DNA of 64,000 bases, taken from Anaeramoeba ignava BMAN. Lineage: Eukaryota; Protista; Anaeramoebae. Location: the NCBI GenBank assembly GCA_028826165.1, contig JAPDFW010000130.1, positions 1-64,000 of the forward strand, in the 5' to 3' direction. The first letter of the stretch is position 1; each line of letters opens with the position of its first letter. The notes beneath the pieces are model-generated. The model did not search any database and had not been told where the DNA came from. It worked only from the letters and a program-made list of their open reading frames with translations. Below are positions 6,001 through 60,760 of this stretch, one piece after another. The translations under genes were made by a program, and so were the position numbers.

Positions 6001-7033
6001 TTAGGAGAAAAATCCAGAAAATCAATACAATATTGTTCTTTTATATAATCATCTAAAATTGAATCATAAAATTTTTGTTTAACCAATTTTTCTGAATATT
6101 TTTTTTTATCAAATTCATCAAAAAAATTGAAGGATAATCTTTTAAAAACTGGATAATATTGAAGTATAATAGGCTCTGGAGTTTTAATTTCCAATTGAAA
6201 AAGTAAAGTATTTTTGAGAGAATTTTTTAAGAAAACTGAATTTGGATCTTTTTCTGCATTTTCAAAAAATGTAATTATCAAATCAATTAGTTGAAAAATT
6301 AAGGATTGAGGTTTATATAATAAACGAGTAAAAAAGTAATTATCTCTCATTGTGTGTTGATTTAAGCAAAGTAAAGCAAATTTTTCTTTGATTGAAATGG
6401 GATTTGTTTCTGAAAAATTTGAGATGAAAGGAAATAAAAGCCATTCATAAATTTGTGATTTGCAAACATGGGAAATAATTTGAAGACTTTCTCCAAAAAT
6501 AAGTAAATCATTTTTAGTATCAGTATTGCTATCAATATTGTTGTTATTATTATTTGAATCATTTTGATAAAAAGGGATATAAAAAGAAAATTAAGAAAAT
6601 GAGAAATAACTTGGTTTGTATTAATTTTTGAATTATTCTGTTTGTTTTGATTCTCAAAAATAGTAAAATGGAAATTGGATTTTAAATTGATTTTTTCAGA
6701 AAGAATTTTCTCTTCCATTTCTTTTTCTTTTTCTTTTTCTTTTTCTTTTTCTTTTTCTTTTTCTTTTTCTTTTTCTTTAATAAAAGAAAAAATAATTTCT
6801 TTTTCTTTTTCTTTTTCTTTTTCTTTGAAATATTTAGAAACATCAAAATCTGAAAACAAAATATTTGTAAATGGAAAATGTTTCATTTCTTGTTTTTCAA
6901 CAACTGTTTTTGTTATTACTTTATGTTTTCTGTTTCTTTGTTTGGTTTGAATTTTAAAATAAAATTGAATAAGATTCAAATCTGTAATTAAAAGTTTGGT
7001 TATTTCAGGATCAAAATAAACCACAATTTTCAT
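1..7033 (-). pseudogene. RNF213/mysterin-like large AAA+ protein, fragmented and degenerate (continues past the window start)
   Basis: Colinear minus-strand ORFs 6362-7033, 5154-6350, 4418-5035, 3267-4187, 2459-3079 and 1577-2134. They carry RNF213-type motifs: ENVLFC..., the P-loop YSSEKSGYGKT followed by LHVELS and LYIEIP, and FFTLDNFLRMILI..LLTNIPIII. The Walker A expected after IPIII is absent (KTTNENLNS). There are many frameshifts and stops. Confidence 0.6.
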
Positions 7034-7319
7034 TTTAAATTAAAAAAAAAAAACTTTTTTTATATCTTTCTTTTTAATTTTAAATTTAAAAAAAAAAATA
7101 AAAAAGAAAAATAAAAAATAAAAGAAAAATAAAAAAAAAGGAAAATTAAATTTTTAAATTAATTTAATTTTTTAAATTAATTTAACTATTTTATATTTTT
7201 TTTAAAAAAAAAACTTAAATTTTTATTTTTATTTTTAAAAAAAAAACAAAAACAAAACAATTTTTATTTTCTTTTTATTTTTATTTAAAAATTTTAAATG
7301 AAAAATTTTAAAAACAATT

Positions 7320-8530
7320 TTCTAATTTTAATTTTGATTTTTAATTTTAATTTTAATTTTGATTTTGATTTTAATTTTGATTTTAATTTTAATTTTAATT
7401 TTGATTTTGATTTTAATTTTGATTTTGATTTTAATTTTGATTTTGATTTTAATTTTGATTTTAATTTTAATTTTGATTTTGATTTTGATTTTGATTTTGA
7501 TTTTAATTTTAATTTTAATTTTGATTTTGATTTTTGATTTTGATTTTGATTTTAATTTTGATTTAAATTTTAATTTTTTTGATTTTTTTGATTTTAATTT
7601 TAATTTTTGATTTTGATTTTGATTTTGATTTTGATTTTGATTTTAATTTTGATTTTGATTTTTAATTTTTGATTTTGATTTTAATTTTTGATTTTGATTT
7701 TAATTTTGATTTTAATTTTGATTTTGATTTTAATTTTAATTTTGATTTTGATTTTGATTTTGATTTTAATTTTAATTTTGATTTTGATTTTGATTTTAAT
7801 TTTAATTTTAATTTTGATTTTAATTTTAATTTTTTGATTTTAATTTTAATTTTTAATTTTAATTTTAATTTTGATTTTTGATTTTAATTTTAATTTTTAA
7901 TTTTAATTTTAATTTTGATTTTGATTTTAATTTTAATTTTGATTTTAATTTTGATTTTAATTTTAATTTTGATTTAATTTAATTTTAATTTTGATTTTGA
8001 TTTTGATTTTGATTTTAATTTTGATTTTGATTTTGATTTTAATTTGATTTTGATTTTGATTTTGAATTTTGATTTTGATTTTAATTTTGATTTTGATTTT
8101 GATTTTGATTTTAATTTTGATTTTGATTTTTAATTTTGATTTTAATTTTGATTTTGATTTTGATTTTTGATTTTGATTTTTGATTTTTAATTTTAATTTT
8201 GATTTTTAATTTTGATTTTTTGATTTTGAAATTTTGATTTTGATTTTTTAATTTTTTGATTTTCATTTTGATTTTTTTCATTTTTAATTTTGATTTTGAT
8301 TTTGATTTTGATTTTAATTTTAATTTTGATTTTGATTTTCATTTTGATTTTGATTTTGATTTTGATTTTCATTTTGATTTTGATTTTGATTTTGATTTTC
8401 ATTTTGATTTTGATTTTGATTTTGATTTTAATTTTTGATTTTTAATTTCATTTTAATTTTAATTTTGATTTTGATTTTTAATTTTGATTTTGATTTTGAT
8501 TTTCAATTTCATTTTGATTTTGATTTTGAT
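7320..8530. repeat. TTTTGA/TTTTAA hexamer microsatellite (reads as QN repeats on the minus strand)
   Basis: Direct inspection. The ILIL, DFNF and KIKI ORFs here are repeat artefacts. Part may be the low-complexity C-terminus of the RRM protein. Confidence 0.9.
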
Positions 8531-11383
8531 TTTCATTTTGATTTTGATTTCGTTTAAAAACTTTAAAACCATATGGAGGATTTTGTGAAAAATGATCCAA
8601 AACTTTTTTTAAATCATTTTCATTTTCAAAAGAAACAAAACCAGATTTTGGTTTTTTAGTTTTTGAATAAAACATTTTTGAAGAAGAAATTTTTAAATTT
8701 GGATTAATTTTGAGACATTCTTCACGCAATTTTGCTGAATCAAAATCATTTATTGATTCAATCTTTTCAAATTGAAAATTTAAATTAAATTTTTTGATAA
8801 ATTCCTTTTTCAAATTCTTATTTTGTTCAAGAATTTTTTTTCTTTCTGATTTTTTCATTACTCTTTCAACTATTATTTCTTGATCTAAAATTCTTTTTCC
8901 ATTCATTTTCATAATTGCTTCTTTTCCTTCTTGATTTTTTTCAAATTGAATGATTGCAAATTGAGATTTTGTTTTTGATTGGATTTTTTCTGGAATTGGT
9001 TTTAAATCTATTTGTAAATTTTTTCCGAAATTTTGAAATAATTTTTTTAGATCTTCTTTTTGATAATTTTCTGGGAAGTTTTTGACATAAACCCATCTAA
9101 ATTTTTGGTTTGGATCTTTTTGTTTTCTAAATAAAATATTTCTAATTCAAAACAAAATATTTACAAATATAAATCAAAATATTTATAAATTTAAATTAAA
9201 ATATTTATAAATTTAAATTAAAATATTTATAAATATAAATCAAAATATTTATAAATTTAAATCAAAATATTTATAAATATAAATTAAAATATTTATAAAT
9301 ATAAATCAAAATATTTATAAATCTAAATTAAAATATTTATAAATATTTATAAATTAAAATCAAAATATTTATAAATATAAATCAAAATATTTATAAATAT
9401 AAATCAAAAATATTTATAAATATAAATTAAAATATTTATAAATATAAATCAAAATATTTATAAATTAAAATTAAAAATATTTATAAATATAAATCAAAAT
9501 ATTTATAAATATAAATTAAAATATTATAAATTTAAATCAAAATATTCATAAATTTAAATCAAAATATTTATAAATTTAAATTAAAATATTTATAAATTAA
9601 ATCAAAATATTTATAAATATAAATCAAAATATTTATAAATTTAAATCAAAATATTTATAAATTTAAATCAAAATATTTATAAATTTAAATTAAAATATTT
9701 ATAAATTTAAATCAAAATATTTATAAATATAAATCAAAATATTTATAAATATAAATTAAAATATTTATAAATTTAAATTAAAATATTTATAAATTTAAAT
9801 CTTAAAATATTTATAAATTAAATTAAAATATTTATAATTTTAAATCAAAATATTTATAAATTAAATCAAAATTTTAAATCAAAATATTTATAAATTTAAA
9901 TCAAAATATTCATAAATTTAAATCAAAATATTTACGGATTATAATCAATAAGAGTAATTTCCAATTCTTTTCCAAAATATTGTTTAGTATTATAATAAAG
10001 TTCAGCTTTTTTTGCATCTTCAAATTTCTTAAATGTTACAAATCCTATATTCTCTTGATTGGATTCACTATTTTGAATAAATTTTGTTGAATTTGGTGAA
10101 AAAATTTGAAATAAAGCAAAAAGACTTTCATTTGTTTCTTGATTTGGAAGATTTGAAACTTTTCTAAATTTTTTAAATTAATAAACAAGGGGAATATAAA
10201 TTAAAATAATTTATAAACTTTTTAGAATTTGTTTTCAATTATTTTTACAATGTAAATTCTTTTTCCATTTCAATTTCTTTTTCTTTTTCAATTTGATTTT
10301 GATTTTCAATTTCAATTTTGATTTTCAATTTGATTTGATTTTCAATTTGATTTTTAATTTGTTTTTCAATTTGATTTTCAATTTGATTTTCAATTTGATT
10401 TTCAATTTGTTTTTCAATTTGATTTTGATTTTGATTTTCCATTTGATTTTCATTTTGATTTTGAATTTGATTTTCAATTTGATTTTCATTTTGAATTTGA
10501 TTTTGAATTTGATTTTCATTTTGATTTTCAATTTGATTTTCAATTTGATTTTCAATTTGATTTTCAATTTGATTTTCAATTTGATTTTCAATTTGATTTT
10601 GAATTTGATTTTCATTTTCATTTTCATTTTGATTTTCAATTTGATTTTCAATTTGATTTTCAATTTGATTTTCTTTTTCAATTTGATTTTCATTTTGATT
10701 TTCAATTTGATTTTCATTTTCATTTTCATTTTGATTTTCAATTTGATTTTCAATTTGATTTTCAATTTGATTTTCAATTTGATTTTCAATTTGATTTTGA
10801 TTTTCAATTCCAATTTGATTTTGATTTTGATTTTCAATTTGATTTTCATTTTCAATTTGATTTTCAATTTGATTTTCAATTTGATTTTCAATTTGATTTT
10901 GATTTTGAATTTGATTTTCAATTTGATTTTCATTTTGATTTTCAATTTGATTTTCATTTTCAATTTGATTTTCAATTTGATTTTGATTTTGAATTTGATT
11001 TTCAATTTGATTTTCATTTTGATTTTGATTTTGATTTTCAATTCCAATTTGATTTTCAATTTGATTTCCATTTTGATTTTCTTTTTGATTTTCAATTTGA
11101 TTTTCAATTTGATTTTGATTTTGATTTTCAATTTCATTTTGATTTTGATTTTCATTTTCAATTTGATTTTCAATTTGATTTTCAATTCCTTTTTCAATTT
11201 GATTTTCTTTTTCATTTTGATTTTCAATTTGATTTTCATTTTGATTTCAATTTGATTTTCATTTTGATTTTCAATTTGATTTTCAATTTGATTTTCAATT
11301 TGATTTTCAATTTGATTTTCATTTTTGTTTTGATTTTCAATTTGATTTTGAATTTGATTTTCTTTTTCAATTCCTTTTTGCAT
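8478..11383 (-). CDS. Multi-RRM RNA-binding protein (divergent polyadenylate-binding-protein-like) with a long QIEN-repeat N-terminus
   Basis: Exons about 11383-10249, 10163-9936 and 9141-8478, with GT-AG introns. RRM1: LKVSNLP...IGFVTF. RRM2: VYVKNFP...FAIIQF...[14 protein letters not shown] (PABP-like linker). RRM3: SGFVSF. Indels occur within the repeat exon. Confidence 0.7.
9150..9930. repeat. Intronic 22-bp minisatellite (caaaatatttataaatttaaat)
   Basis: Tandem units fill the intron 9142-9935. Confidence 0.9.
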
Positions 11384-15923: not shown

Positions 15924-18900
15924 TCAATTCAATTCATTTGAATCTTTTTTCGGTAGAAAAGATCGTAAAATAGTTTCAAAAGATGAATCTTCGTGTAATT
16001 GATAAAAATCAGCAGCATTATCAAGTTCTTCCAAAACATCCAATGGAGTATCTGGATCAATTGAATCAAAATACATCCATTGAACCAGAATTTGAATAGC
16101 CTTTAAACTTTTTCCAGAATAATCCTGAACAGTAGAAGAAGGATCATTAACAGACTCAAACATATGAAGATACAAATCAGATCTTGCTGATAAAAGAAAC
16201 TTATGAATTTTGACAATTTGATCATCCACTTTTATTCCAAAATCTTTGCTTTCTTCATCCAAATAAAGCTGTTTTAATCCTAATAATAAACTATTTCTTG
16301 CTGATTTTTCACTTAAATCAATCCCATATTTTTCACATGTTTTGATGCTTTCTTCATTTTTGGGTTGTTCTCCTGAATAAACCCACTTTATAATCTCAAC
16401 AACTATATTATCATCTTCTATATCTTGAATTCCTTCAATAAATTTATCCATTTTTTCCTTATTCCCAATTCTTGCCAAAAGGAAGTGTTTATGACAAGGA
16501 AATGATTCATGTTTTGTCATGATTTTGAAATCGGTTAAAAATTTACTTGAATAAAAAGTTTCAAGTTCTTTGCAAATATTTCTAAAACTTAAAATGATTT
16601 TTTTTGTGTCTTCGTTTGCATTATTTGTTAGATCTTGTGAATTATAAAGAATATCAATAGGAGCTCCAGCAAGAATGATATCAATTAATCTATCTTTTTT
16701 TGACAAACGAGTTGCATTCCAAACAATTGGAACACACTAAATCAAAATATTTCAAAATATTCAAAATAATTAAAATATTTTAAATAATTAAAATAATTAA
16801 AATAATTAAAATAATTCAAATAATTAAAATAATTAAAATAATTAAAATAATTCAAATAATTAAAATAATTTAAATAATTCAAATAATTAAAATAATTTAA
16901 ATAATTAAAATAATTAAAATATTCAAAATAATTAAAATATTCAAAATAATCAAAATAATTAAAATAATTTAAATATTCCAAAATAATTAAAATAATTAAA
17001 ATATTCAAAAATAATTAAAATAATTAAAATAATCAAAATAATTAAAATAATCAAAATATTTCAAAATAATCAAAATAATCAAAATATTCAAAATAATTAA
17101 AATAATTCAAAATAATTAAAAATAATCAAAATAATTAAAATAATTAAAATATTCAAAAATAATTCAAAATAATTAAAATATTCAAAATATTTAAAATAAT
17201 TCAAAATATTTCAAATATTTAAAATAATTAAAATAATTAAAATATTTCAAAATAATTCAAAATAATTAAAATAATTAAAATAATTAAAATAATTAAAATA
17301 TTCAAAATAATTAAAATATTTCCAAAATAATTAAAATAATTAAAATAATTAAAATAATTAAAATAATTAAAAATAATTAAAATAATTCAAAATAATTAAA
17401 ATATTTAAAATAATTCAAAATATTCAAAATAATTAAAATAATTCAAAATAATTAAAATAATTAAAATAATTAAAATAATTAAAATAATTAAAATAATTCA
17501 AAATAATTAAAATATTTAAAATAATTCAAAATATTCAAAATAATTAAAATAATTCAAAATATTTCAAATAATTAAAATAATACTTACATCGCTTAACCAA
17601 AAATCAGCATGTTTCAATAATAATCTAAAAGAATCTCGAGGTGTTTTTTCTGAATACTGTTTTAATAGTATATGTAATGGTGTTTGATTCTACAAAAAAA
17701 TTTGTTTTGTTAATTTTCATTCAATTTAATTTAATTTTCTTTTAATTTACATCCTTTTTTTTTGGAATACAATTTTAATATCAATTTAAAAAAATTCGTG
17801 TTTGAATTCATCTTCTTTAAATTACTAACTGTTTAAATTCTATCTTAATAATCTTTTTTTCAATTATTTCTTTTTTTCAATTTTTTTACATTCTTTTTTT
17901 TTATTAAATTAATTTGATAAATTTCATTATAAAAAATTAAAATTACTAAATCATTCACTGAGAAACCCTTATCTAATAAAAATTCAATTTTGGTTTTTGA
18001 TGTTTCTCCTTCACAAGCTCTATGAAGAATTGTACTTCCCTTATTATTTAATCAAAATGATTATTATTATCACTATAAATATAAATCTTAAAAAAAAAAA
18101 GATTTTGTTTATTGATTTACTTTTCTAAAAATTTAATTTAATTTAAAAGAAAAAAAAAGAAATTATTTTTCCAATAAATTTCTTCTTTTTACTGAATCAA
18201 CTTGTTTCAAATTAACATTTGAAGAAATCAACTTTTTAATAATTGTTAAATCTTCACTTGAATTCATTGCATAATCTATTGCAACTTTTTTCTAATAATA
18301 AATCTTATTATTAAAGAAACTTTTTTTTTTTATTGAAAAGAAAATTTTTTCAAATCAAATTTACATGCTAAATTGAAAATATTTTATTCATTCTCTTTTC
18401 TAATATCTTAAAAAAGAATAAGAAATAAAACAAACATCCTAAATCCAAAAACAAATATATATAAATTAAATAATAAATTTTCATTCAAATTAAAGTTCCC
18501 TTTTTTTTACATTCTTTTGAATTTTTTTCATTAAAATTTATTCAAAAAAAAAACTCAATTTTAATTTAAAATACATGCTATAAAATATTATTTTGAAATT
18601 ATATTAATTTTCTTTTTGGATAAATAATTAAATGAATAAAATCAATACAAACTAAAAAAATAATAATAATAACAATAATATTTTTGGTTTTTTAGCATTA
18701 ATTAATTAATTAATTAATTCCAAAAAAAAATTTACAAGCTAAAAATAATTTAAATTAAATTGTCTTCCAAACAAAACAAAATATTTATATTTAAATTAAA
18801 TTCTACTTGCTAATAAAATGGAAAAAAATTTGATTTTGATATTTTTTTGATCAAAATAAAAGGAAAAACTTTTTCATTTTTGAAATCAAACATGCTAAAT

Positions 18901-19999
18901 TTTTTTTTTAGAAAAAGAATCAAAATTTTAGTTTTTTTACTTTATTTAATAAGAAAAAAAAAACATAAAATATTTACAATCTAAAAATAAAATTACTCCT
19001 CAATAAAAAATATTTTATCAAATAAAATATAAATTTATTTAAATTACATGCTAATTATTTATCCAAAAAGTAAAATCAAATGAAATCAAATGAATTTAAA
19101 TTTGAATTTAAAATTAAAATAATAATTTACAGTTGGGATATTTGGATCAGCTCCATTATCAAGTAAAAATTCTACAAGCGGAATATCTCCTTTTTGAATA
19201 GCAAAAATTAAAGGTGTAAAATTCTAAATTTTTTATAATATTTTTAATATTTTTAATATTTTTAATAATAAAACATTTACATCCTTTAAAAAGAAAAAAA
19301 AAAAGGGAATTATTTATAAAAATTAATGAAAAGGAAATATTTATCATTTACATACTAAATAATTTTAAAGTAATTTGTTTGTATTAATTTTTTTAAAAGA
19401 AGATTTTTATCTTTTCAAATTTACAATCTAAAACAAAAAGAAGAAAAAATAATTAAAAAATTTAATAAGAATAAAATTGTAATGATTTTTTACAGTCTAT
19501 AAAAACAATAAATTAAATTTAAATTTAATTCAAATTAGCTTTAAATTATCTTTATTACTCTCTTTATTAAAAGAAATATATAAAATTTAAATATTTTATA
19601 TTGAAAAATAATATTATTTACAGTCTAAAATTTTTTATAAAAATAAAAATAAAAATTAATTATAATTTTAATATAATTTTACTATTGGTAAATTTAAATC
19701 AGCTCCAATAGAAAAAAGATGTTTAATAATTTCTAAATCAATGTTTTCTTGTTTGCAAGCAAAAGCTAAAGGAGTAAATTTCTATTATAATTATAAAATT
19801 ATATAATTTAAATAAAATAATTTTAAATAAAAAGCAAATTTTTTTACATTCTAAATTTAAAAATTAAAATTTTAAAAATAATTCTAAATTAAATTGATTT
19901 TTTTTTTACATAAAGAATATTGATATTATCTTTATTAGCTTCTTCTTTAACTGATTTTAAATCGTTTTTTGTTATTGCTTCAAATAATTTTTCACTCAT
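15924..19999 (-). CDS. Ankyrin-repeat + tandem BTB/POZ protein with arrays of single-codon microexons
   Basis: Phase-0 exons: 19999-19910 (MSEKLFEAITKNDLKSVKEEANKDNINILY), 19781-19683 (KFTPLAFACKQENIDLEIIKHLFSIGADLNLPI), 19223-19131 (NFTPLIFAIQKGDIPLVEFLLDNGADPNIPT), 18291-18193 (KKVAIDYAMNSSEDLTIIKKLISSNVNLKQVDS), 18039-17947 (GSTILHRACEGETSKTKIEFLLDKGFSVNDL), 17689-17588 (NQTPLHILLKQYSEKTPRDSFRLLLKHADFWLSD) and 16736-15924. The last exon has two BTB domains (TDFKI..FPCHKHFLLAR; SKDFGI..IHKFLLSARS). All exons have AG/GT borders. Confidence 0.88.
17751..17892 (-). other. Array of 3 single-codon microexons: N,L,D
   Basis: AG|NNN|GT at 17890-92 AAT, 17826-28 TTA and 17751-53 GAT. Introns are 54-72 nt. 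Including all three gives VNDL-NLD-NQTPLH, the canonical ankyrin spacing. Confidence 0.8.
18121..18124 (-). other. Microexon AAA(A), probably a single Lys codon with a homopolymer over-call
   Basis: ttttAG|AAAA|GTaaat. One Lys here gives QVDS-K-GSTILH, the ankyrin consensus spacing. The assembly has other homopolymer indels. Confidence 0.55.
18365..19050 (-). other. Array of 10 single-codon microexons: H,I,H,Q,L,F,H,N,D,H
   Basis: AG|NNN|GT at 19048-50 CAT, 18978-80 ATT, 18892-94 CAT, 18807-09 CAA, 18736-38 CTT, 18650-52 TTT, 18575-77 CAT, 18511-13 AAT, 18436-38 GAT and 18365-67 CAT. Introns are 61-83 nt. Confidence 0.8.
19281..19624 (-). other. Array of 6 single-codon microexons: T,R,T,I,Y,D
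   Basis: AG|NNN|GT at 19622-24 ACT, 19559-61 AGA, 19494-96 ACT, 19425-27 ATT, 19352-54 TAT and 19281-83 GAT. Introns are 57-70 nt. Confidence 0.8.
19848..19850 (-). other. Single-codon microexon AAT (Asn) between exon 1 and the first full ankyrin exon
   Basis: tttAG|AAT|GTaaa, with flanking introns of 59 and 66 nt. Confidence 0.75.
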
Positions 20000-20122
20000 T
20001 TTTTTGTTTTGAAATTGAAATGAAAAAAATGAAAATAAAATTGTTTTATTAATTTAATTTGTTTTTTTTTTCTCTATCAAACAATTTTTTAAAAAGAAAA
20101 ATTAATAATTTCTTTTTCTTTT

Positions 20123-39803: not shown

Positions 39804-42800
39804 TTAATCTCCATATTCAATCAAAATCTCATCAACACCAACATTTTGTCCGGTTTTGACATTGATTTTCTTGATAGTTGTGTCTTTCTCGCATTTAAGA
39901 AGATTTTGCATTTTCATAGCTTCAATGATGCAAAGTTCTTCACCAGCATTGACTTTATCGCCGGGTTTTTTGTCAGTAATTGAGAAGATCATACCTGGCA
40001 TGGGGGCAACAAGGAATTTAGAAGTGTCAAGAACAATTGGTTCTGGCATGAAGGGGGCAAGTTCAGCTTGTCTTTTTGTTCTGACAAAAACATCGAATTT
40101 TGTTCCGAGATGCCGGATTACAAATCCTTCTGGTTTTGGTTTGATCATCTGCAAAACAACCTTTTTGTTGTTGATTGTGGCTTTGAAAATATGGTCATCG
40201 ACAATCCAGTCAATGTCTTTGACGATGTTTTTGTTGCCGTTGGCTGTGATGATGTAGCCGTCTTTTGTCTTTTCAACGTCACAATTGTATTTTTCTTCGA
40301 GGAATTGAACAACAAATTCAGATTGAGGATCGTGTTTGAATCCTTGTAGTTTTCCGGAGATTGTGTGAGCTTTTTCTGCGCGAAGAAGATCCATAATAAT
40401 TGCGCCAGCAGCCAATTGTTCTTTTTCGTCTGGCTTTAAAACAACGCCTTTGAAACCATCTGGCCACATTTCTGGGATGTATTTTGTGGTGATTTTGCCT
40501 TCAACATAGCGCGGTTGATCGAGAATAGCGCGCAAAAATGGGATATTGTGATTGACACCTTCGATCACATAAGAATCAAGTGCTTCTTTCATTCTTTGGA
40601 TTGACTCGTTTCTTGTTTTGCCATAAGTGATCAACTTCGAGATCAATGGATCATAAAACATCGAAATTTCAGCTCCATCAATAAAGCCAGTGTCAATTCT
40701 GATCGACTTGTCTTCCGGAATTTCGGGTTCTTTGTATTTGACAAGTGTTCCGATCGAGGGCAAGAAGCCTCTTTCAGGATCTTCGGCATAAACACGACAT
40801 TCAGTTGCCCATCCATTAATGCCAATGTCGGATTGTTTTACTGACAATTTTTCTCCGGCAGCAACTCTGATCATGTGTTCGACAAGATCAAGTCCTGTCG
40901 TGTATTCAGTCACTGGATGCTCAACTTGCAATCGAGTGTTCATTTCCAAGAAGTAGAAGTTCTTATTTGGATCGACAATGAACTCGCATGTTCCGGCAGA
41001 ATTGTATTTGACAGCATGACATAACATGACAGCTTGTTCTCCCATTTTTTTTCGTGTTGCCGGATCCAAGAAAATTGACGGCGCTTCTTCAATGACTTTT
41101 TGGTTTCTTCGCTGAATTGAGCATTCACGTTCGTTGACATAGACAGCATTGCCGTAATTGTCAGCAAGCACTTGGATCTCAATATGACGTGGGTTGTCAA
41201 TGAATTTCTCAATGAAAATTCGATCGTCATCAAAAGCAGATTTTGCTTCTTCTTTAGAAAGTCGGATACCTTCTTTTGCTTCTTCATCATTCCAAGCAAC
41301 TCTCATTCCTTTTCCTCCACCGCCTCCGGCAGCTTTGATCATAATTGGATATCCAATTTGATGTGCGATTTTAAGAACTTCTTCTGGTGTGAAAACTTCT
41401 CCAACGTATCCTGGGATGACATTGACACCTGCTGCTTTTGCTATTTTTTTACTTGCAATTTTGCATCCCATTTGGTCAATTGCATCTGCGTGTGGTCCAA
41501 TGAATACCATTCCGTTGTCTGCTACTGCTTTGGAAAATTCTCGCTTCTCACTTAGAAATCCATATCCTGGATGAATTGCTTGTGCTCCTGTTTTCTTTGC
41601 TGCGTTGATGATGTTTTCAATAATGAGATAACTTTGGTTTGATGGTGCTGGTCCCTTTTATAATATAAAATAAAATAATTTAATTTAATTTAATTTAAAT
41701 TAATTTAAATTAAAATCTTATTTTATTTTATTTTATTATTTTATTTACCACTCGAACAACTTCATCAGCTTTAGCAACATGAAGTGAACTTAAATCTGCA
41801 TCAGAATAAACTCCAACAGTTTTGATTCCCATTTTTTTGGCAGTTCGCATAATTCTGCATGCGATTTCACCTCTAAATAAATTTTAATTATTAATTTAAT
41901 TATTAATTTAATTATTAATTTTATTATTAATTTAATTATTAATTTAATTATTAATTTAATTATTAATTTTATTATTAATTTTATTATTAATTTTATTATT
42001 AATTTTATTATTAATTTTATTATTAATTTTATTATTAATTTTATTATTAATTTTATTTATTAATTTTATTATTAAATTTATTATTAATTTTATTATTAAT
42101 TTTATTAATTAATTTATTATTAATTTAATTATTAATTTTATTATTAATTTAATTATTAATTTTATTATTAATTTAATTATTAATTTTATTATTAATTTAA
42201 TTATTAATTTTATTATTAATTTAATTATTAATTTTATTATTAATTTAATTATTAATTTTATTATTAATTTAATTATTAATTTTATTATTAATTTAATTAT
42301 TAATTTTATTATTAATTTTATTATTATTTTTATTATTATTTTTATTATTAAATTTATTATTAAATTTATTATTAAATTTATTATTAATTTTATTATTATT
42401 TTTATTATTATTTTTATTATTGATTTAATTATTAATTTATTATTAATTTTATTATTAATTAATTATTGATTTTAATTATTAATTAATTATTGATTTTTAA
42501 TTATTAATTAATTATTGATTTTAATTATTAATTTTTATTATTAATTTTATTATTAATTTTATTATTAATTTTATTTATTAATTTATTTATTAATTTTATT
42601 ATTAATTTTATTTATTAATTTTATTATTATTTTTATTATTAATTTTAATTATTAATTTTAATTATTAATTTAATTATTAATTTTATTATTAAATTTATTA
42701 TTAATTTTATTATTAATTTTAATTATTAATTTTATTATTAAATTAATTATTAAATTTATTATTAATTTTATTATTAAATTTATTATGATTTTAATTATTA

Positions 42801-48701: not shown

Positions 48702-51700
48702 TTAATCCCATTTTTTTTTCTTTCTCAAAATATTAAATCCATTTGCTCCAGAAAAACCTATTTGACACAAATCACAAACGGAACAAATTTGACGATCAAA
48801 TTGTGGAAAATAATTCGATCCACAAAAAGGACATTTTCGAGAAGAATTTGAATTATAAATGGGACGCAAAGAATAACAGCAAATAACAAAAGAATTATTT
48901 GTGTTGTAATCAAGTTTATATTTATTAGATTTATTCTTTTCACACAAAGAGATAATTTTTTTCACCTTTTGGATAAATTGAATATCTGTATTGAATTCTA
49001 ATAAACGCTTTGCAAATACAAGCGCATCCAAATAATTCTGCATTTTTGCGCATAAAAACATTGCAGAACGAAGAGCAAGAACAAGATGCTCTGGCTGAAT
49101 CTTGCAATGTGTAAAATAGCAAATCATTTCTAAACTTCGAGTTGGATCTATTTGTGATTTTTCTTTTTTCTCAATTTCTAACTTGAATGCAATTATATAT
49201 TCTCGACACATTTTGATAATTTTCTTGATCTTTTTAATATCAGAAATTTCATCAACAACAACTAAAGGAATTTGGTGTAAAATTTCTTGGAAAATCTTCA
49301 AACTTTGTGAAAATTTTCCTTGAGTTGTGAGACTTAAAGCTTGATTTAATAAGTTTTCCAAAGATTGCTTATTAATAACTTGCTTAGAAAAATGATTTCC
49401 ATTCAAGATGTTTGATTCAAATTGTGGAATGATAATTGGATTTATATTTGGAAATCCTTGCAAAGTATTGTTTGCACCTAAAAAACTTGATAAAAAATAT
49501 TTTTTCATTGGTGAAAAATTTATTACACCAAATTGAGTATTAAGAATCTTCATTGATTCGTTGAATAATCCAAGTGTTGCTAATTCTCCAGGAGTTTCTG
49601 TGTTCATAATGAGGTTTTCATTTGGATATTCTTTATGTAATGGAGGAATATAAATTAATTTTTCATTTTCATCAATATCAATAATATTTTCAATAATATT
49701 TTCATTATCATTTTCATCAATATTAAAAATATTTTCATCAATTTCAATATCGTTATAATTTTCATTTTCAATTTCAATATCTTTTTCTATCATTGATTCA
49801 AAACTCAATAAAGGCCAATTTTTTGGTGAACTAATTACAAAAGGTGGTTTTAAAAGAAATTTTTGAGTTGGAAAAAAATTTGGAATTTTTTTGTTTTTCA
49901 AACGAAATAATTCCTCAATTTCCTTCGCCTTTTCTTCAATACCATAAGTTTTTGCAGTTAAATAAGCATAAATAAGTTGATTTGATGATATTAACAATTG
50001 TATTCTTTGTTCAATATTTCCTGTCATTAAAGACACTTGAAATTGAAGAGAAGTTTCTTTGAAAAGTTGAGAAGAATTGGATTCATTTTGAGTTTTCTGC
50101 ATTTGGCCTGTAATAGCGCTAAGAAATAAAAACTTTCTTCCATCTCCTTGTCTAAAATAACTACGTTCAGCAATTTCAATATTTCCTTGTTCAATCGCAT
50201 TTTTTGATAATATTTTCCATAATTCTTTTTGATTTATTATTTCCGCAAATTTTTCCGCCATAAAAAGATCTCCAGAATCAATCGCAAATGTAAATCTAAG
50301 CTGTGGAATTTCTGTGAGATGAAGCGCAATTTCAGAGAGATGATGCTGTTGAAGAAACATCACAATTGCTTTTCCTGGGAATTTTGAATTTTTCACAATT
50401 TCCAAAATTTTTTGCTTGTTTTTCTCAAGAGCCGATGCTTTTAGTTCAAAATCTGTTTCGTTGATCTTTACAAAATTGATTTCTGAATTGTGATCCAAAT
50501 AGTAAATTTTTGAATTGGAAAAAAAGCAAAGATAAACAGGTTTGGTAATTGTTTGGATGATTGCGGTATCTCCATTGAGTAAACCGTATTTCAAATGATC
50601 ATAAGTTGAATATAGAATAACATGAGAAGAAGTCCATATCATGCTTTTGATTCTGAAAGTTTCAATAATAATTGCTTTTTTCTGAAATTTTTTGTTATAA
50701 ATGAAAATTGAGTTTTTGGAAACTAACGCAAAATATAAGTTGTCTTTCGACCAGAAAACTTGTCTAATATTCTTTGCATCGATTAACCCAGTCGTGCATT
50801 TTGTTTGAAGATCATATCGCAAGATTTGGGAGGGTGTTGCTAATAGAAAAGATCCTGTATCGGCTGGGAAAAGAGCGCAAGATGAAGGATCACAATCCTG
50901 AATATTTTTATTTCCTGAATTGACAAGAATATCTGTTATTGATATTGCGAGTGTTTCTTGTGTGTCAACATTCCTGAGAAAGATGTTATCGTTGTGGATT
51001 GAAATGAACTTATTTCGAGAAACCCAAACACTAGATCGACCAATTTGTAAATTTGACAGTTTTTTTTGTAAACAAGAAAATAATAAGAATTTTTGTTTGG
51101 ATTGAATCAAAAGCATTTCTGATGAAGGATTATATTGCAAACTGTGAATATTTGAGATATCCAATTTCTTTGAAATGCGAACCATTCGTTGTTCTATGTC
51201 TGTTTTAAAATTGAATCTTAATATTCTGGCATCACGATAAAAAAATAGATTTTCAGAAGAAAAACAAAAGGGAGATTTTTGACTCTTTAATTTAAACACA
51301 ACAAGACCACGATCATTTCCAGTTGCGAATATATTCTGTGTTGGATGAGCATCCAGACACCAGTGCTTGTTGTTTTTTGTATTGAAAACAACTGAAGAAT
51401 TTTTATTTTCAATGTTCCAAACACGAAGAGAAAAGTCTTCAGAATTTGACAATATCAGATCCTCTTTGGGATGGAACACAACAGACGAGACACAGGCGTT
51501 ATGACCGGAGAAAGTAGCAGCAACCCATGCCTTGTACTCAGATAATCTCCACAGTTTTATTTTATTGTCATCGGAACATGAGACAACAAGCGGGAAAGAA
51601 GGATGAAAACTCGCCCAATTAACCCCCATTTCGTGATCTTCAAGAATAAATTTCGGTTCTACATCAGATGGCCCAAACATGTCTGTGGGAAGTCCCATTA

Positions 51701-52277
51701 AAGAAGGTGTCATTTCCATAGAAAAATTGTCAGGATCATCCACACTTATATCGTTATTTCGGGAAAATTTTTGTTTTAATCCAGTGATGTCCCAGATGAT
51801 AATGGTCCCATCCAAGGAGGCAGAAAGAAGCGTATTCATTCTCGGATGGAATTCAACATGTGTGACGATATTGTTATGTCGAACGAGTATGGCAATACAC
51901 GATCTGTTTTGGAAGTTCCATATTCTCACTGACATATCATCAGAAGAGGACACAACCCAAGGCTGCTCGCTGTGGAAGTGAACACTCCGGATAATATCTG
52001 TATGACCCTTTAGGCTGAATTGTAATTTCTTGTTCTGGTAGTTCCAAATTTTTACTAATTTGTCATCTCCACCTGTCACAAATAGTGGCAATGTTTTATG
52101 GAAATTAACTCCTCTAACACTCCCTTTTGTTGCTTGAAATTCTTCATATTTATATTTGTGAATGTAATCCCATATCTCAATTTTACCATTACTTAATCCA
52201 CAAAGAATCCAAGATCGAGTTGGATGAAATGATAATGTTTTTACTGTTTTTGATTTTGTTTTAAATTTGATTTTCAT
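48702..52277 (-). CDS. COPA: Coatomer subunit alpha (alpha-COP), intronless and divergent
   Basis: 1191-aa ORF. N-terminal WD40 repeats (FHPTRSWIL, FVTGGDD, GVNWASFHP). C-terminal region includes YFTHCKIQPEH..LALRSAM and the Cys cluster CPFCG...CSVC. Confidence 0.93.
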   Translation of the reverse strand: MKIKFKTKSKTVKTLSFHPTRSWILCGLSNGKIEIWDYIHKYKYEEFQATKGSVRGVNFHKTLPLFVTGGDDKLVKIWNYQNKKLQFSLKGHTDIIRSVHFHSEQPWVVSSSDDMSVRIWNFQNRSCIAILVRHNNIVTHVEFHPRMNTLLSASLDGTIIIWDITGLKQKFSRNNDISVDDPDNFSMEMTPSLMGLPTDMFGPSDVEPKFILEDHEMGVNWASFHPSFPLVVSCSDDNKIKLWRLSEYKAWVAATFSGHNACVSSVVFHPKEDLILSNSEDFSLRVWNIENKNSSVVFNTKNNKHWCLDAHPTQNIFATGNDRGLVVFKLKSQKSPFCFSSENLFFYRDARILRFNFKTDIEQRMVRISKKLDISNIHSLQYNPSSEMLLIQSKQKFLLFSCLQKKLSNLQIGRSSVWVSRNKFISIHNDNIFLRNVDTQETLAISITDILVNSGNKNIQDCDPSSCALFPADTGSFLLATPSQILRYDLQTKCTTGLIDAKNIRQVFWSKDNLYFALVSKNSIFIYNKKFQKKAIIIETFRIKSMIWTSSHVILYSTYDHLKYGLLNGDTAIIQTITKPVYLCFFSNSKIYYLDHNSEINFVKINETDFELKASALEKNKQKILEIVKNSKFPGKAIVMFLQQHHLSEIALHLTEIPQLRFTFAIDSGDLFMAEKFAEIINQKELWKILSKNAIEQGNIEIAERSYFRQGDGRKFLFLSAITGQMQKTQNESNSSQLFKETSLQFQVSLMTGNIEQRIQLLISSNQLIYAYLTAKTYGIEEKAKEIEELFRLKNKKIPNFFPTQKFLLKPPFVISSPKNWPLLSFESMIEKDIEIENENYNDIEIDENIFNIDENDNENIIENIIDIDENEKLIYIPPLHKEYPNENLIMNTETPGELATLGLFNESMKILNTQFGVINFSPMKKYFLSSFLGANNTLQGFPNINPIIIPQFESNILNGNHFSKQVINKQSLENLLNQALSLTTQGKFSQSLKIFQEILHQIPLVVVDEISDIKKIKKIIKMCREYIIAFKLEIEKKEKSQIDPTRSLEMICYFTHCKIQPEHLVLALRSAMFLCAKMQNYLDALVFAKRLLEFNTDIQFIQKVKKIISLCEKNKSNKYKLDYNTNNSFVICCYSLRPIYNSNSSRKCPFCGSNYFPQFDRQICSVCDLCQIGFSGANGFNILRKKKKWD

Positions 52278-56103: not shown

Positions 56104-59100
56104 ATGGGACAAAAACCAACAAAAAAAAAACCAGAAAACGAACAAAAAACAGAAGAAAAGAAAGAAGAAAAGAAAGATGAAAAGAAAGATGAAAAGAAAG
56201 ATGAAAAGAAAGATGAAAAAAAAGATAAGGAAATGACCCCAATGGAAACTGTATATTTTGGATCAACAAGATATTCACTTCTCATTTCAACAGACAAAAA
56301 AACTTACAAACCAGGAGAAACAGTTTATATTCGAGGAATTTTATTAGAAGCATTTACACACAAACCAGTTGAAAATTTTGCCGGAAACGGAAATCCATAT
56401 ATGAAGATATTAAGTCCAAAAGGGGATACAGTATTAGAAAGCACAATCTCATATCAATCAGACAGTGTTTATTCCTTCTCATGGGCAATACCAGAAGATT
56501 CAGTTGGAGGAGAATACAAAATGCAAATTTATCACAAATCTGGCAAAGGAATTCCAATTAACGAAAGGGGATTTACAATTAGAGTTTTTCGACCTCCCAG
56601 ATTAAAATCCGATTTGGAGTTTATTCAAAAGGCTTATGGCGCAGGGGATGAAGTCAAAGCGAGTTTATCTGTTGAGAGAGCTGAGGGAGGGTTTCCTGAA
56701 GGAGCTAATGTTACTGCTATTGCTAGACTGGATAATGAGGAAGTTTATAGAGGTGATTATGTTCTTGATAAAAATGGAAAGTGTATCATTTCTTTTAAAT
56801 TACCTGATGAAATTAAAGAAGGCATTGGTAATCTTAACTGCTCAATTACTGATGGTGGTGTTAATGAAAATGCCTCTAAAACTCTTCCTGTTGTTCTTAA
56901 AAAAATGGATGTTCAAGTTTTTCCTGAAGGTGGTGAGTTAGTTTATGGTTTAAAATGTGGTGTTTATTTTGAAGCTGTTACTCCTTCTGGAAGTCCTGCT
57001 GATTTTGAAGGAATTTTAGTTTGTTCTAAAGGAGATAAATTGAATAAAGATATTAAAAGTAAATATTCAAAAAATATTAAATATAAAATAAAAATAAAAA
57101 TATTAAATAAATATTTATAAAATAAAAATAGTGAAAACTAATCATGAAGGAAGAGGAAGATTCGAATTCACTCCTCAAAAGGAAATCAATTACGAAATCA
57201 AAATCATAAAACCAGCTGGTGTTACTGTTCCTGTTCAACTTCCAGAAATTAAATCAGAAGGAGTCTCAATAATCTCAAACAAAAAATCATTCCATTTCAA
57301 AGAAAAAATCTCAATCACAATTTCATCAACACGAAAAGAAGAATATATAGTTGGAGTTTACAAAAGAGAAAAAGAAATATCAACAAAAGAAATCAAGTTC
57401 AAAAAAGAACGAGAAAGTCAAAAAATAGAACTTGAAACAAAAGAAAACGATGGAATTCTTAGAATCACTGTTTGGAAGAAAACAGATTTAACACCAATGG
57501 CTGAAAGAATAGTATTTGTTCATCCAGTTGATGAAATCATATTTGAAATTGAACCTGATAAAAAAACATATTGTCCAGGAGACACAGTTTCATTGACAAT
57601 TAAATCAAAAACCAAATCAGGAAAACCTATACAAGCCATTTGTGGAGTTACTGTTACTGATGATAGTGTGTTTAAAATGACTGAGAAAAGAGAAAGACCT
57701 CCAAGATTACCAGCAATGTATTTCCTTGAAAACGAAGTTGAACATCTTGAAGATTGTCAAATTTATCTTTCGCCAGATCAAGATAAAGATAAAGAAAAAG
57801 AAAAAGATAATCAAGAAAAAGAAAAATTGGAAAAATTCACTGAATTGGATCTTTTATTAGGAACTCAAGGTTGGAGAAGATTTTTAAAAATTGATGAAAA
57901 ATTATTGGATGATCCAGATAAAGAAAAATTGGAAAAATTATTTGTTGTTTATTGTGACCCAAATATATTATCAAGAGAAATAAGAAAAGTCAAAAGAAAA
58001 GATGAAATTCAACAAATCAAAACAAATGTTTTGAATCAAGAAATATTCAAAGAAGAAAAAGTTTTTGAAAGAGATGCCATTTTAGAAAATCAAATTCAAA
58101 TGAATTTCAATGAAATTGACGAAATAAAAAGAAAAACAAGTATTGGCGATGAAATGGAACAACCACAACTATTGATAATGGAAATGGAAAAAGCGCCACC
58201 ACCAATGCTTGAAATGAAACAAAAACAACAACTACCACCACCAATGCCTCAAATGCAACAACAACAGCAACTACAACCACCAATGCCTCAAAAGCAAATG
58301 CAAGCGCTTGCACCTCCAAAACCAATGCCTGCAATGGCTCCAGTACCACCATTTGTTCAAAAAAAAATTATGATGGAAGAAATGGAAAAACCACAAATGA
58401 AAAGAATGAAAATGAAACCAGTGATGATGAGAAGAAGGGAAATGGAAAGGGAAATGGAAATAGAAGAAGATGAATATTGGTCAGATGAAGATGATGAAAT
58501 CTGGGATGATGAAGTATTAGCACCTACTCCAACTATTCCTTATTTCAGAGAATTTATTCATAGAAGAAAACCAGATAGACAACCTGGTGAAAGAAATGAT
58601 TTTGTTGATACTCTTTTTTATATTTCTTCAATCAGAACAGAAAAAACCAAAGACATCTTCGAACAAAAGATCGAATTTGATTTGAATGATTCTGTTTCTT
58701 CATTCAGAGTTTTCATTGATGGATTCAATTCAGAAGGTTTACTTGGATTTTCTGAGAGTTTTGTTGTTGATTCAAAAGAACCATTTTATTTAGAACCAAA
58801 ATTCCCACTTGAAGTTTCATTTGGAGATAAAATTAATCTTCCAGTAGCGCTTGTTAATTCTTTGCCAAATGATATGGATATCACATTGAAAACAGAAATA
58901 CTCAGTAAATCATTAGCAATCGAAGGAGATTCAGAATGGAAAGGACAACTTAAATCAGAAGAAAGAACAAAAAAATTTTTCAACTTGACAGTTAATCAAT
59001 CACTTGAAAAAGCAAAACTCAAAATCAACGGAAACGACACGAAAAATCCTGCAATAAAGGATCAAGTTACAAGAGAAATTGAAGTCAAACCTGCTGGCTT

Positions 59101-60760
59101 TCCTTTGTCTCTAGATGTAAGTGGAATGCTAGAACCAGAAGGAACAGTAACTCAAAAAATGACAATTCCTGATGAAATTATTGAAGGAAGTATCACAACC
59201 TATTGCAGTGTTTTCCCATCGCCAATGGGAACTTTAACAGAATCACTCAAATCATTTATTCGCGAACCTTGCGGTTGTTTCGAACAGACTTCAATGACTG
59301 TGTATCCTTTAACAATGGCACAACAATATTTCAAAACACATACTGGAGTTGATCCAAATTTCGTCACCGAATCAAATGAGAAACTTGAGAGAGGATACAA
59401 ACGATTGATTGGCTACGAATGCAAAAAGGGAGGTTATGAATGGTTTGGAGAAGATCCAGGCCACGAAGCTTTAACCGCAATGGGGATCATGGAATTCACT
59501 GATTTGTCACAAGTTTTCCCAGTTGATCAAGAAATGCTCAAAAGAACAACAAGTTGGGTTTTGACAAGAATCAACAAATCAAAAGGGGTTTTCGAAAGGA
59601 ATTCACTTGCTCTTGATTATTTCGGTGGAGCACCTCCTCACACAACTGATGCTTATATCACTTGGGCTTTATCCGAATCCAAAATTGAATATAAAGAACT
59701 CAAACCTGTTGTCGATAATTTAATCAAACAATCACAGAAAGAATTCAAAGAGGATTCTTATTTCCTTTCTTTGCTTTCCTTGATTTTGTTCAATTTCGGT
59801 TTCAAAGATCAATCACTTGAATTATGCAAAAAATTGACAGCACTTCAAAACAAGGAATCAAAAGATATCAAAGAAAAAGGCCATTTAACAAAAGCTAAAA
59901 CATCAATCACTCGCTCATCAGGTTTCAATTTGAACATGGAAACAACATCATTGAGCGTTGTTTCTTGGCTCAATTTCCCCGATCAATTCGCAGAAAATAT
60001 CGAAGATGCAATGCAATTCATCACTTCAAATTGCAAAGGCGGAAATTTCGGTTCAACTCAATCAACTGTTCTTGCCTTAAAAGCAATCATGAAATACGAT
60101 ATATATTCCGCTAAAGCAACAAAAGAAGGATCAATTGAGTTGATTGTTAATGATGAATCAGTTGAGGCTTTGGGATTTGTTCCAGACCAAAAGGGAGCAA
60201 TGATTTTCCCTGATTTCTCTTCGTTTTTACAGAAAGGAAAAGAAAATGTGATGGAATTGAAAATGATTGAAGGATCCAAAATGCCTTTTGTGATTCAACT
60301 CTCACTTACAACTCCAAAACCAGATTCAAATCCAAATTGCAAAGTGAATCTTTCAACAAAATTGATTTCAACAAATAAAAAGGAATCAAAGACTAACACA
60401 ATCAAACAAGGCGAAGCAACAGAGATTGAAGTGATTGTTACTAACAAAACAGACGAAGGCATCCCAATGACTGTTGCTATTATTGGGCTACCTGGTGGTT
60501 TGGAAGTCAGATACGACCAATTAAAAGAACTTGTCAAAAAAGGAATTATCGCTTCTTTTGAAATGATTGGAGCAAGAGAACTTGTTTTTTATTGGAGAGC
60601 TATGAAACCTAAAGAAGTTATCAAGTTTAGTGTTGATGTTATTGCTGCTGTTCCTGGAATTTATACTGGTCCTTCTTCAAGAGTCTATCTTTATTACACA
60701 AATGATGAGAAGATTTGGATTGATCCACTTAAGATTGAAATTCTTCCTGATGAAAAATGA
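56104..60760 (+). CDS. Alpha-2-macroglobulin / thioester-containing protein
   Basis: Exons 56104-57058 and 57132-60760. MG-domain motifs STDKKTYKPGETVYIR and FPEGG. Also DLLLGTQGWRRF, a P/M/Q-rich bait-like region, the thioester motif REPCGCFEQ, GGYEWFG and STQSTVLALKA. Confidence 0.9.

Follow-up and report, generated by a model that had tools for sequence, protein, structure and literature searches.

The ankyrin-BTB gene described here, from the anaerobic amoeba Anaeramoeba ignava, lies on the minus strand at 15924-19999 of the window, the 64-kb stretch of DNA that was analysed, with its ATG at 19999 and its stop codon at 15924-15926. It consists of seven long exons (19910-19999, 19683-19781, 19131-19223, 18193-18291, 17947-18039, 17588-17689 and 15927-16736) and 21 single-codon exons, the latter grouped along the gene as 1 + 6 + 10 + 1 + 3. 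The ankyrin repeats come first and are followed by the last exon, which carries the BTB domain. Every microexon is 3 nt long and in phase 0, keeping the reading frame, and together they account for 63 of the 1452 coding bases. AG-NNN-GT flanks are present at 20 of the 21; the exception is an AAA site as assembled. Rfam and tRNA scans of the 64 kb returned no matches.

The ten-codon array (18292-19130, minus strand) spans 839 nt between exon 3 upstream (19131-19223; 31 aa, NFTPLIFAIQKGDIPLVEFLLDNGADPNIPT) and exon 4 downstream (18193-18291; 33 aa, KKVAIDYAMNSSEDLTIIKKLISSNVNLKQVDS). Exon 3 is in phase 0 at both ends and has AG/GT boundaries. The array is composed of 11 very A+T-rich GT..AG introns alternating with ten 3-nt exons, and the introns measure 80, 67, 83, 82, 68, 84, 71, 61, 72, 68 and 73 nt. 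Microexons 1 to 10, all on the minus strand, are CAT (His, 19048-19050, ttag-CAT-gtaatt), ATT (Ile, 18978-18980, ttag-ATT-gtaaat), CAT (His, 18892-18894, ttag-CAT-gtttga), CAA (Gln, 18807-18809, ttag-CAA-gtagaa), CTT (Leu, 18736-18738, ttag-CTT-gtaaat), TTT (Phe, 18649-18651, ttag-TTT-gtattg), CAT (His, 18575-18577, atag-CAT-gtattt), AAT (Asn, 18511-18513, aaag-AAT-gtaaaa), GAT (Asp, 18436-18438, ttag-GAT-gtttgt) and CAT (His, 18365-18367, ttag-CAT-gtaaat). Joined together, they read HIHQLFHNDH. As the original prediction had stated, CAT occurs four times among these codons, each time as tAG-CAT-GT.

The interval holds exactly these ten AG-NNN-GT sites on the minus strand and no others. Such clustering exceeds chance, the rough expectation for 839 nt being about one site. 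Across the minus strand of the whole window, 18 of the 32 matches to [T/A]AG-NNN-GT[A/T][A/T] fall inside 17751-19850, that is, within this gene. The donors of the array do vary, as had been noticed before (GTAA six times, GTTT and GTAT twice each, GTAG once). All are used, and they are weaker than is typical of the family: A is absent at position +4 in 5 of 11, compared to only ~7% of donors in the ankyrin-family arrays.

Transcript evidence comes from one assembled contig of 1465 nt, in the only public run with the locus (library type unrecorded). It matches six long exons within 17586-20060, exons 3 and 4 among them, with zero mismatches, and its five junctions hold 3, 18 (+1), 30, 3 and 9 additional letters, respectively. 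At the third of these, the contig joins 19131-19223 to 18193-18291, skipping the 839 nt but keeping 30 letters, the reverse complement of ATGATCATTATGAAAAAGTTGATGAATATG, which are the ten codons in genomic order. In genome searches the last exon was found once, and the 30-mer nowhere as a contiguous, intronless sequence. The contig is therefore spliced RNA of this locus, and a retrocopy as its source was dropped on the same grounds. The mature transcript thus encodes HIHQLFHNDH as a ten-residue insert at the boundary of ankyrin repeats 3 and 4, and the predicted ten-microexon array is real. Only the all-inclusive isoform was assembled, no contig being reported with another form of these junctions; assembled contigs drop rare isoforms and carry neither quantities nor splicing order.

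The remaining microexons follow the same pattern. The six-codon array in the preceding loop (19224-19682, minus strand) reads ACT AGA ACT ATT TAT GAT (TRTIYD) between AG/GT sites. The contig has 19 unaligned letters there, one exon base plus 18, and inclusion of this array is inferred from length only. Three single-codon exons lie within 17690-17946 on the minus strand, AAT (17890-17892), TTA (17826-17828) and GAT (17751-17753), reading N L D, and the contig letters joining exons 5 and 6 are AATTTAGAT. The AAA (Lys) microexon, at 18121-18124 on the minus strand, has three A in the transcript versus four in the genome assembly (TAG-AAAA-GTAAAT). A homopolymer error in the genome assembly and a splice site of non-canonical type are the two candidate explanations for this mismatch. 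A four-base AAAA exon compensated by a shifted acceptor was rejected, as three letters precede the piece of the contig whose alignment starts at 18039. In total, the 21 codons are accounted for by 20 canonical intron sites plus the AAA site, and each canonical AG-NNN-GT site in the introns of the gene matches letters present in the transcript.

The public protein model (P0001) lacks all 21 microexon residues. It has 462 aa, compared to 483 with the 21 codons, and joins DPNIPT straight to KKVA; an exact-sequence look-up of the last-exon product found no record. Domain searches and folding were performed on single exons and on this model, without the inserted residues. The Pfam Ank profile (PF00023) matches exon 3 with an E-value of 8.4e-8 (32.5 bits, cut-off 21.1), and more weakly, under the cut-off, exons 2 and 5. 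BTB (PF00651) matches the last exon in two stretches, with an E-value of 3.1e-12 (47.1 bits). Residues 2-30 of the 31 aa of exon 3 align to positions 3-31 of the 33-position Ank model, and these alignment ends leave about two positions per junction. Consistently, two to three microexons is the commonest number at 117 ankyrin-ankyrin junctions of the family. About two residues would suffice here, as originally argued, and the ten-residue insert is far longer than this canonical length. The folded P0001 model has five helix pairs, and its six junctions all fall in inter-repeat loops (6/6), the ten-codon junction corresponding to the loop at residues 86-97. Inter-repeat loops are the classical target-contact surface of ankyrin proteins. 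The protein probably acts as a substrate adaptor of the Cullin-3 type, with the ankyrin loops as a putative target-binding face, to which the long His-rich loop would belong.

Further analysis of related loci revealed the same organization. In 140 kb from 24 loci, sites with 3-nt spacing number 596 on the gene strand versus 15 on the opposite strand, whereas the other spacings from 0 to 15 nt give 6-38 sites each, so that k = 3 alone is enriched; for k = 0 the counts are 11 versus 9, with no enrichment. Stop codons make up 2 of 442 array codons versus 38.5 expected (P = 3e-15), and the GC content is 27% in array codons versus 14% in introns. Comparison of paralogs showed the flanking AG/GT bases kept in 136 of 136 cases, with introns 87.7% identical. 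At junctions of 31-32-aa ankyrin exons, the codons often spell K-D-G or K-D, the canonical ankyrin turn; at the sequence level, these residues and the stop depletion argue for translation of the microexons. Ten-codon loops recur at six other family junctions, which suggests that loops of this length are used in their entirety.

A genome-wide search for the triple-site pattern gave 91 matches versus 88 in a reversed control, a near equality that makes the raw count uninformative. The matches do concentrate in ankyrin genes. Arrays of this type were present at all loci subsequently retrieved but one, L033, whose array is of a different kind. The single-codon-exon architecture characterises large ankyrin gene families of the A. 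ignava genome, and no description of consecutive single-codon exon arrays was found in literature searches that also covered microexons in combination with Dictyostelium and the Anaeramoeba genomes.

We are highly confident that the ten AG-NNN-GT units are genuine one-codon spliceosomal exons, all ten of which are present in the mRNA of the ankyrin and BTB gene. According to the public annotation, the 839 nt are instead a single intron, with the internal units as unused cryptic sites or relics. The fusion in P0001 does keep the frame, but the transcript contradicts this reading with exactly the 30 letters predicted, and the stop depletion, the enrichment of 3-nt spacing alone and the conservation of splice sites in the family also stand against it; we regard it as scarcely credible.

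Combinatorial alternative splicing, in which every single-codon exon would serve as an optional cassette and many loop variants arise as a natural DARPin-like library, is improbable in our judgement. Since each of the 21 exons is in phase 0, skipping any subset would leave the frame intact; the weak donors, five of 11 without A at +4, are compatible with some exon skipping; and the loops sit between repeats, where ankyrin proteins classically touch their targets. However, the sole assembled isoform holds all ten codons with no contig of another joint form, the microexon splice sites are kept among paralogs at every base compared, and the exact ten-codon loop length recurs in the family. Moreover, microexons encode the structural K-D-G, and such residues cannot be optional. 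The original prediction proposed selection among codons and named inclusion of the full loop in all transcripts as the result that would speak against it; full HIHQLFHNDH is what the only assembled isoform contains, and selection among codons is not supported. More likely, the per-codon layout is an evolutionary product rather than an RNA-level device for choosing codons.

In the favoured reading, with all ten codons included in the mRNA, the 61-84-nt introns would be recognised singly, by intron definition. As two spliceosomes presumably cannot occupy introns 3 nt apart, neighbouring introns would be removed successively. Each step would then add one codon to the growing exon, in a manner resembling recursive splicing with three bases retained. 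Such a layout would permit single-residue gain or loss in a loop without disturbing the frame, through copying of an intron and codon or through loss of a splice site.

The origin of the array was also addressed. Growth by tandem duplication of an intron-plus-codon unit had been proposed. Pairwise alignment of the 11 introns, suggested along with it, found only base composition in common, with z no higher than 1.2 in any of the 55 pairs. A recent duplication of intron and codon in this array was dropped, given the lack of similarity among the introns. In the family as a whole, neighbouring introns are likewise unlike, and alike introns derive only from duplicated whole ankyrin-repeat units. 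The codons lend the proposal weak support, being unusually alike (0.563 versus 0.378 for random sets of ten, p = 0.014), with four CAT among ten (p = 3e-4). Microexon birth by chance intron-splitting mutations was dropped as well: it would yield 6- and 9-nt exons nearly as frequently as 3-nt ones, and these are absent. Exclusively 3-nt exons are consistent with copying of a founder unit. A further array, at C87, has 62 units in which the introns are 92% alike and the putative codons between them only 46% alike.

We tentatively suggest, as one possibility, that Anaeramoeba has a mechanism, which may still operate, for multiplying a spliceosomal intron from one codon boundary to the next while the spacing stays at three bases. 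Intron-plus-codon units might be copied, or introns might be inserted or homogenised, and protein stretches with a separate exon for every codon would result. On this view, the ten-codon loop would be an old, diverged product of the intron multiplication, and the C87 array would be young or homogenised. Selection of loop variants by splicing could then make use of such a layout as well.

To our knowledge, three bases are about the smallest exon that splicing handles, and such exons have been described as rare single cases. The array offers a natural system for studying intron recognition and the order of removal by the spliceosome where introns lie 3 nt apart, and also intron multiplication. 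Microexon residues are missing from the public A. ignava proteins, and probably from those of the sister species, so family analyses built on annotated proteins are systematically wrong at the loops. With one codon per exon, loop length can shift residue by residue with no frameshift, and this may be part of the reason why these families have expanded so much.

Several known systems share features with this gene. In recursive splicing, as in Drosophila Ubx and long introns, removal is stepwise and the AG-GT ratchet points leave nothing in the mRNA. Both there and in the stepwise removal inferred for A. ignava, each step rebuilds a splice site beside the growing exon; by contrast, three bases per step are retained in the A. 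ignava array, zero-length sites are unenriched, and AG is not followed directly by GT. DARPins are designed ankyrin binders with randomised hairpin or loop positions. As in DARPins, the microexon residues lie at a repeat boundary in a loop of the target-binding type; however, the natural loops of A. ignava reach 10-13 residues, and variation, if any, is between paralogous genes.

Plant microexons (at most 15 nt) are conserved, encode parts of domains and are widely missed by annotation pipelines (PMC8831610). They resemble those of A. ignava in being short, conserved, domain-encoding and overlooked in annotation, but plant clusters comprise few microexons of varied length, and arrays of at least ten single-codon exons are absent from that report. 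Schistosoma MEGs likewise have runs of very short symmetric exons, whose frame-keeping skipping was proposed to create protein variation (PMC10526429). They encode secreted proteins and consist mostly of microexons in their coding sequence, with exons of mixed sizes (3-81 bp) and introns up to 5 kb (PMC10526429). Compared to these, the A. ignava gene has 3-nt exons only, a small microexon share of the coding bases and introns of 61-84 nt; its microexons are confined to repeat-domain loops, and there is no sequence relationship between the two.

Isolated 3-nt exons are known from animals, among them micro-Ex8 of Drosophila homothorax (PMC7392893), the three-base exon of human MAP4K5 (PMC8632122) and the 3-bp exon of RPS24, one of three microexons of different sizes (PMC11162997). 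They are likewise internal, exactly three bases long and AG/GT-flanked, and add one in-frame residue. The animal exons, however, are single (three microexons in RPS24), usually alternative and located between long introns, whereas the A. ignava gene has a run of ten and a total of 21, separated by short introns and included in the assembled mRNA, with hundreds more such sites across the sampled loci.

The Ank-BTB gene occupies the minus strand (start 19999, end 15924) of a very A+T-rich window (G+C 6-36% per 2-kb block), and comprises seven long exons, every one of phase 0. Five of the seven encode units of 31-34 residues; Pfam ankyrin models match three of these units, exon 3 most strongly (E = 8.4e-8). 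The 270-residue last exon contains a BTB domain (Pfam, E = 3.1e-12). The ten-microexon array is flanked upstream by exon 3 (19131-19223, minus strand) and downstream by exon 4 (18193-18291, minus strand). In the 839 nt between them, pattern search found exactly ten AG-NNN-GT sites, spaced 61-84 nt, in agreement with the original prediction; in gene order they read CAT ATT CAT CAA CTT TTT CAT AAT GAT CAT (HIHQLFHNDH). The fourfold occurrence of CAT, each in a tAG-CAT-GT context, and the varied donors (GTAA, GTTT, GTAG and GTAT) had also been read correctly. With a stricter site pattern, 18 of the 32 minus-strand matches of the whole window fall inside this gene. Its last intron (16737-17587, minus strand; ~850 nt) is far longer than the array introns, and consists almost entirely of a tandem repeat with a ~9-nt unit (AATTATTTT and variants). 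Neighbouring genes differ enormously in intron load; long intron-free open reading frames encode a coatomer alpha (48702-52277, minus strand), an alpha-2-macroglobulin/thioester-domain protein (57131-60760, plus strand) and a biotin carboxylase with a PCC_BT domain (39804-41510, minus strand).

One public run (n = 1) covers part of this locus, containing 28% of the sampled words, about the exonic share. Over the compared stretch 17586-20060, which includes six of the long exons, a 1465-nt contig from this run matches all six with 0 mismatches and skips all introns. The joint of exons 3 and 4 carries 30 extra letters (plus strand, ATGATCATTATGAAAAAGTTGATGAATATG), which on the gene strand are the ten array codons in genomic order; the single-codon exons of the array are spliced in. 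At the remaining joints, the extra letters are AAT, a 19-letter stretch, AAA and AATTTAGAT. The 19 letters represent one exon base plus 18, which fit the six sites ACT AGA ACT ATT TAT GAT by length only, and AATTTAGAT agrees with the sites AAT, TTA and GAT. In total, the contig accounts for all 20 canonical sites in the introns of the gene and for one odd AAA microexon (18121-18124, minus strand). Here the assembly reads TAG-AAAA-GTAAAT and the contig has three A, a discrepancy due to a homopolymer error or, alternatively, to a splice site of non-canonical type. In the A. ignava genome, the last exon is single-copy (next best match, 41% identical), and the 30-mer is nowhere present as one uninterrupted stretch, even when two mismatches are allowed; this identifies the contig as spliced RNA from this locus.

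Across the 42.8-Mb genome, at least 142 paralogous sequences match the last exon, and the same architecture is present in Ank-BTB genes. We sampled 26 loci around paralogs and pattern hits, 24 of which (140 kb) were used for the spacing count. On the gene strand, the pattern [A/T]AG-N(k)-GTA[A/T] at k = 3 has 596 occurrences versus 15 on the other, and 6-38 matches result at each of the remaining k values between 0 and 15. Only two stops were found among 442 array codons, compared to 38.5 expected from intron composition (P = 3e-15), and the G+C content is 27% in array codons versus 14% in introns. K-D-G or K-D, the ankyrin-turn consensus, is a frequent reading of the codons between ankyrin exons of 31-32 residues, as in DFNFQE-K-D-G-KTSLAYL and ADVNLKN-K-D-GDTPLH. 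Among 117 junctions wholly tiled by short introns, 21 have no microexon, nine have one, 39 have two and 30 have three; beyond three the distribution tails off, peaking again at ten (six junctions besides the focal one) and reaching at most 13. Arrays also occur at loci L025, L026, L034 and L037 (G000:C128, C2, C71 and C20), whose genes look, from sequence, as if a cysteine-rich (RING-like) exon and a kinase-like exon come first, followed by ankyrin repeats; the arrays go with the ankyrin module rather than with the BTB family. At another locus (L021, G000:C104:958000-967900, plus strand; positions 6550-8693), 31 consecutive single-codon candidates (TKTTSYQERINPHGDYHDYFNWRTKYVHERR) follow the last ankyrin exon; 3-nt exons alone would here encode roughly one repeat length.

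The original prediction held that so many codons imply a choice among them. The sole assembled isoform has the full ten-codon loop, and no contig with another form of the joints was reported, which goes against such choice. Moreover, every microexon splice site is conserved: between the paralogs L017 and L019, the AG/GT bases beside 34 aligned microexons are unchanged (136/136), with identities of 87.7% for introns, 90.6% for long exons and 93.1% for microexon codons. Structural residues are encoded by the same kind of single-codon exon, and ten-codon loops recur at other junctions. Set against this, contigs lose rare variants, and the donors of the focal array are weak, with five of 11 lacking A at +4 compared to ~7% in family arrays. 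From the full-loop isoform, the conservation and the recurrence, weighed against the weak donors and lost variants, we consider optional inclusion quite improbable as a major function.

When the last exon was searched against proteins, the single public hit was P0001, annotated as "ankyrin repeat-containing protein" of Anaeramoeba ignava. This 462-residue model joins the long exons directly (NILY-KFTPL, LNLPI-NFTPL, DPNIPT-KKVA, QVDS-GSTIL and VNDL-NQTPL) and lacks all 21 microexon residues, the addition of which gives 483 residues. In the Pfam Ank alignment, exon 3 residues 2-30 correspond to positions 3-31 of 33, leaving about two positions per junction, the canonical need that had been predicted. 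The AlphaFold model of P0001, built without the microexon residues from a five-sequence alignment (mean pLDDT 75), has five helix pairs; every one of its six exon junctions (following residues 30, 63, 94, 127, 158 and 192) sits in an inter-repeat coil, and the array junction between residues 94 and 95 lies inside coil 86-97. The ten residues are thus predicted to extend one inter-repeat loop by about eight over the canonical form. The BTB domain suggests a putative Cullin-3 adaptor, in which the ankyrin loops would form the binding face.

In the family arrays, introns are 52-118 nt long (median 69), their donor (GTAAA) is strong and their acceptor is TAG. With such lengths and sites, each short intron would be recognised as one unit. 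The base pairing of U1 involves the three terminal bases of an exon, and the footprint of the spliceosome is far more than 3 nt per exon; because this footprint exceeds the exon, adjacent introns could not be processed together and would be removed in sequence.

Tandem duplication of an intron-plus-codon unit, as originally proposed, was not borne out by pairwise comparison of the 11 focal introns, which are alike in composition alone (largest z 1.2). Neighbouring introns proved dissimilar in the 14 arrays compared, and strongly alike introns stem from duplication of whole repeat units of ~410-470 nt; likeness between adjacent codons in the family does not exceed the random level. The ten focal codons are unusually alike (0.563 versus 0.378, p = 0.014) and include four CAT (p = 3e-4). 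This likeness and the restriction of exons to 3 nt speak for an origin by copying of one unit; a His-rich loop under selection would account for the likeness equally well. If AG and GT had arisen inside introns by chance, exons of 6 and 9 nt would be nearly as frequent; this route was rejected because only 3-nt exons exist.

Arrays with alike introns do exist at a separate, young-looking locus (L033 and L042, G000:C87:271326-278498, minus strand), which has ~70 tandem intron-like units of 83-91 nt. In its 62 core units, the introns are 92% alike, whereas the spacers, exactly 3 nt and variable (ATT, TTT, CTT, GCT, GAA, GGA, AGA, GTT), are only 46% alike, and include no stops and none of the commonest A+T triplets. 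Intron similarity does not drop with distance along the array and barely tracks the codon. Read as codons, the spacers resemble membrane-spanning segments (for example LILLIFGFLIFIFILIAI), and the array occupies the tail of a gene in which the upstream open reading frame (C87:280631-282415) looks like a BTB plus TLDc protein. Relatives of this unit, about 80-85% identical, form arrays at G000:C1:409336-412848 and G000:C57:593698-597543 (L044 and L045), again with 3-nt spacers, encoding polar or Lys-rich runs such as SKNKKKDPKRDKWDKKDKPKKP. The C87 array may represent either a wave of intron copies placed at one codon boundary after another or intron homogenisation under codon selection.

The A+T content of A. 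ignava is 80.65% overall and 91.86% in introns (PMC11550330); neither this genome paper nor the intein paper mentions microexons. In Anaeramoeba flamelloides, the gene of the Ank-BTB homologue P0020 spans 18.5 kb for a 522-residue model (L028, GCA_028892595.1 JAOAOG010000175.1:834933-859478). Candidate single-codon exons with 90-125-nt spacing lie beside each 31-residue ankyrin exon, with 58 sites on the gene strand versus 23 on the other, and the region also has kilobase-long gaps. As the annotated junction loops of P0020 are 2-3 residues short, whereas loops inside its long exons are of full length, other ankyrin gene models of both A. ignava and A. flamelloides likely omit single-codon exons in the same way.
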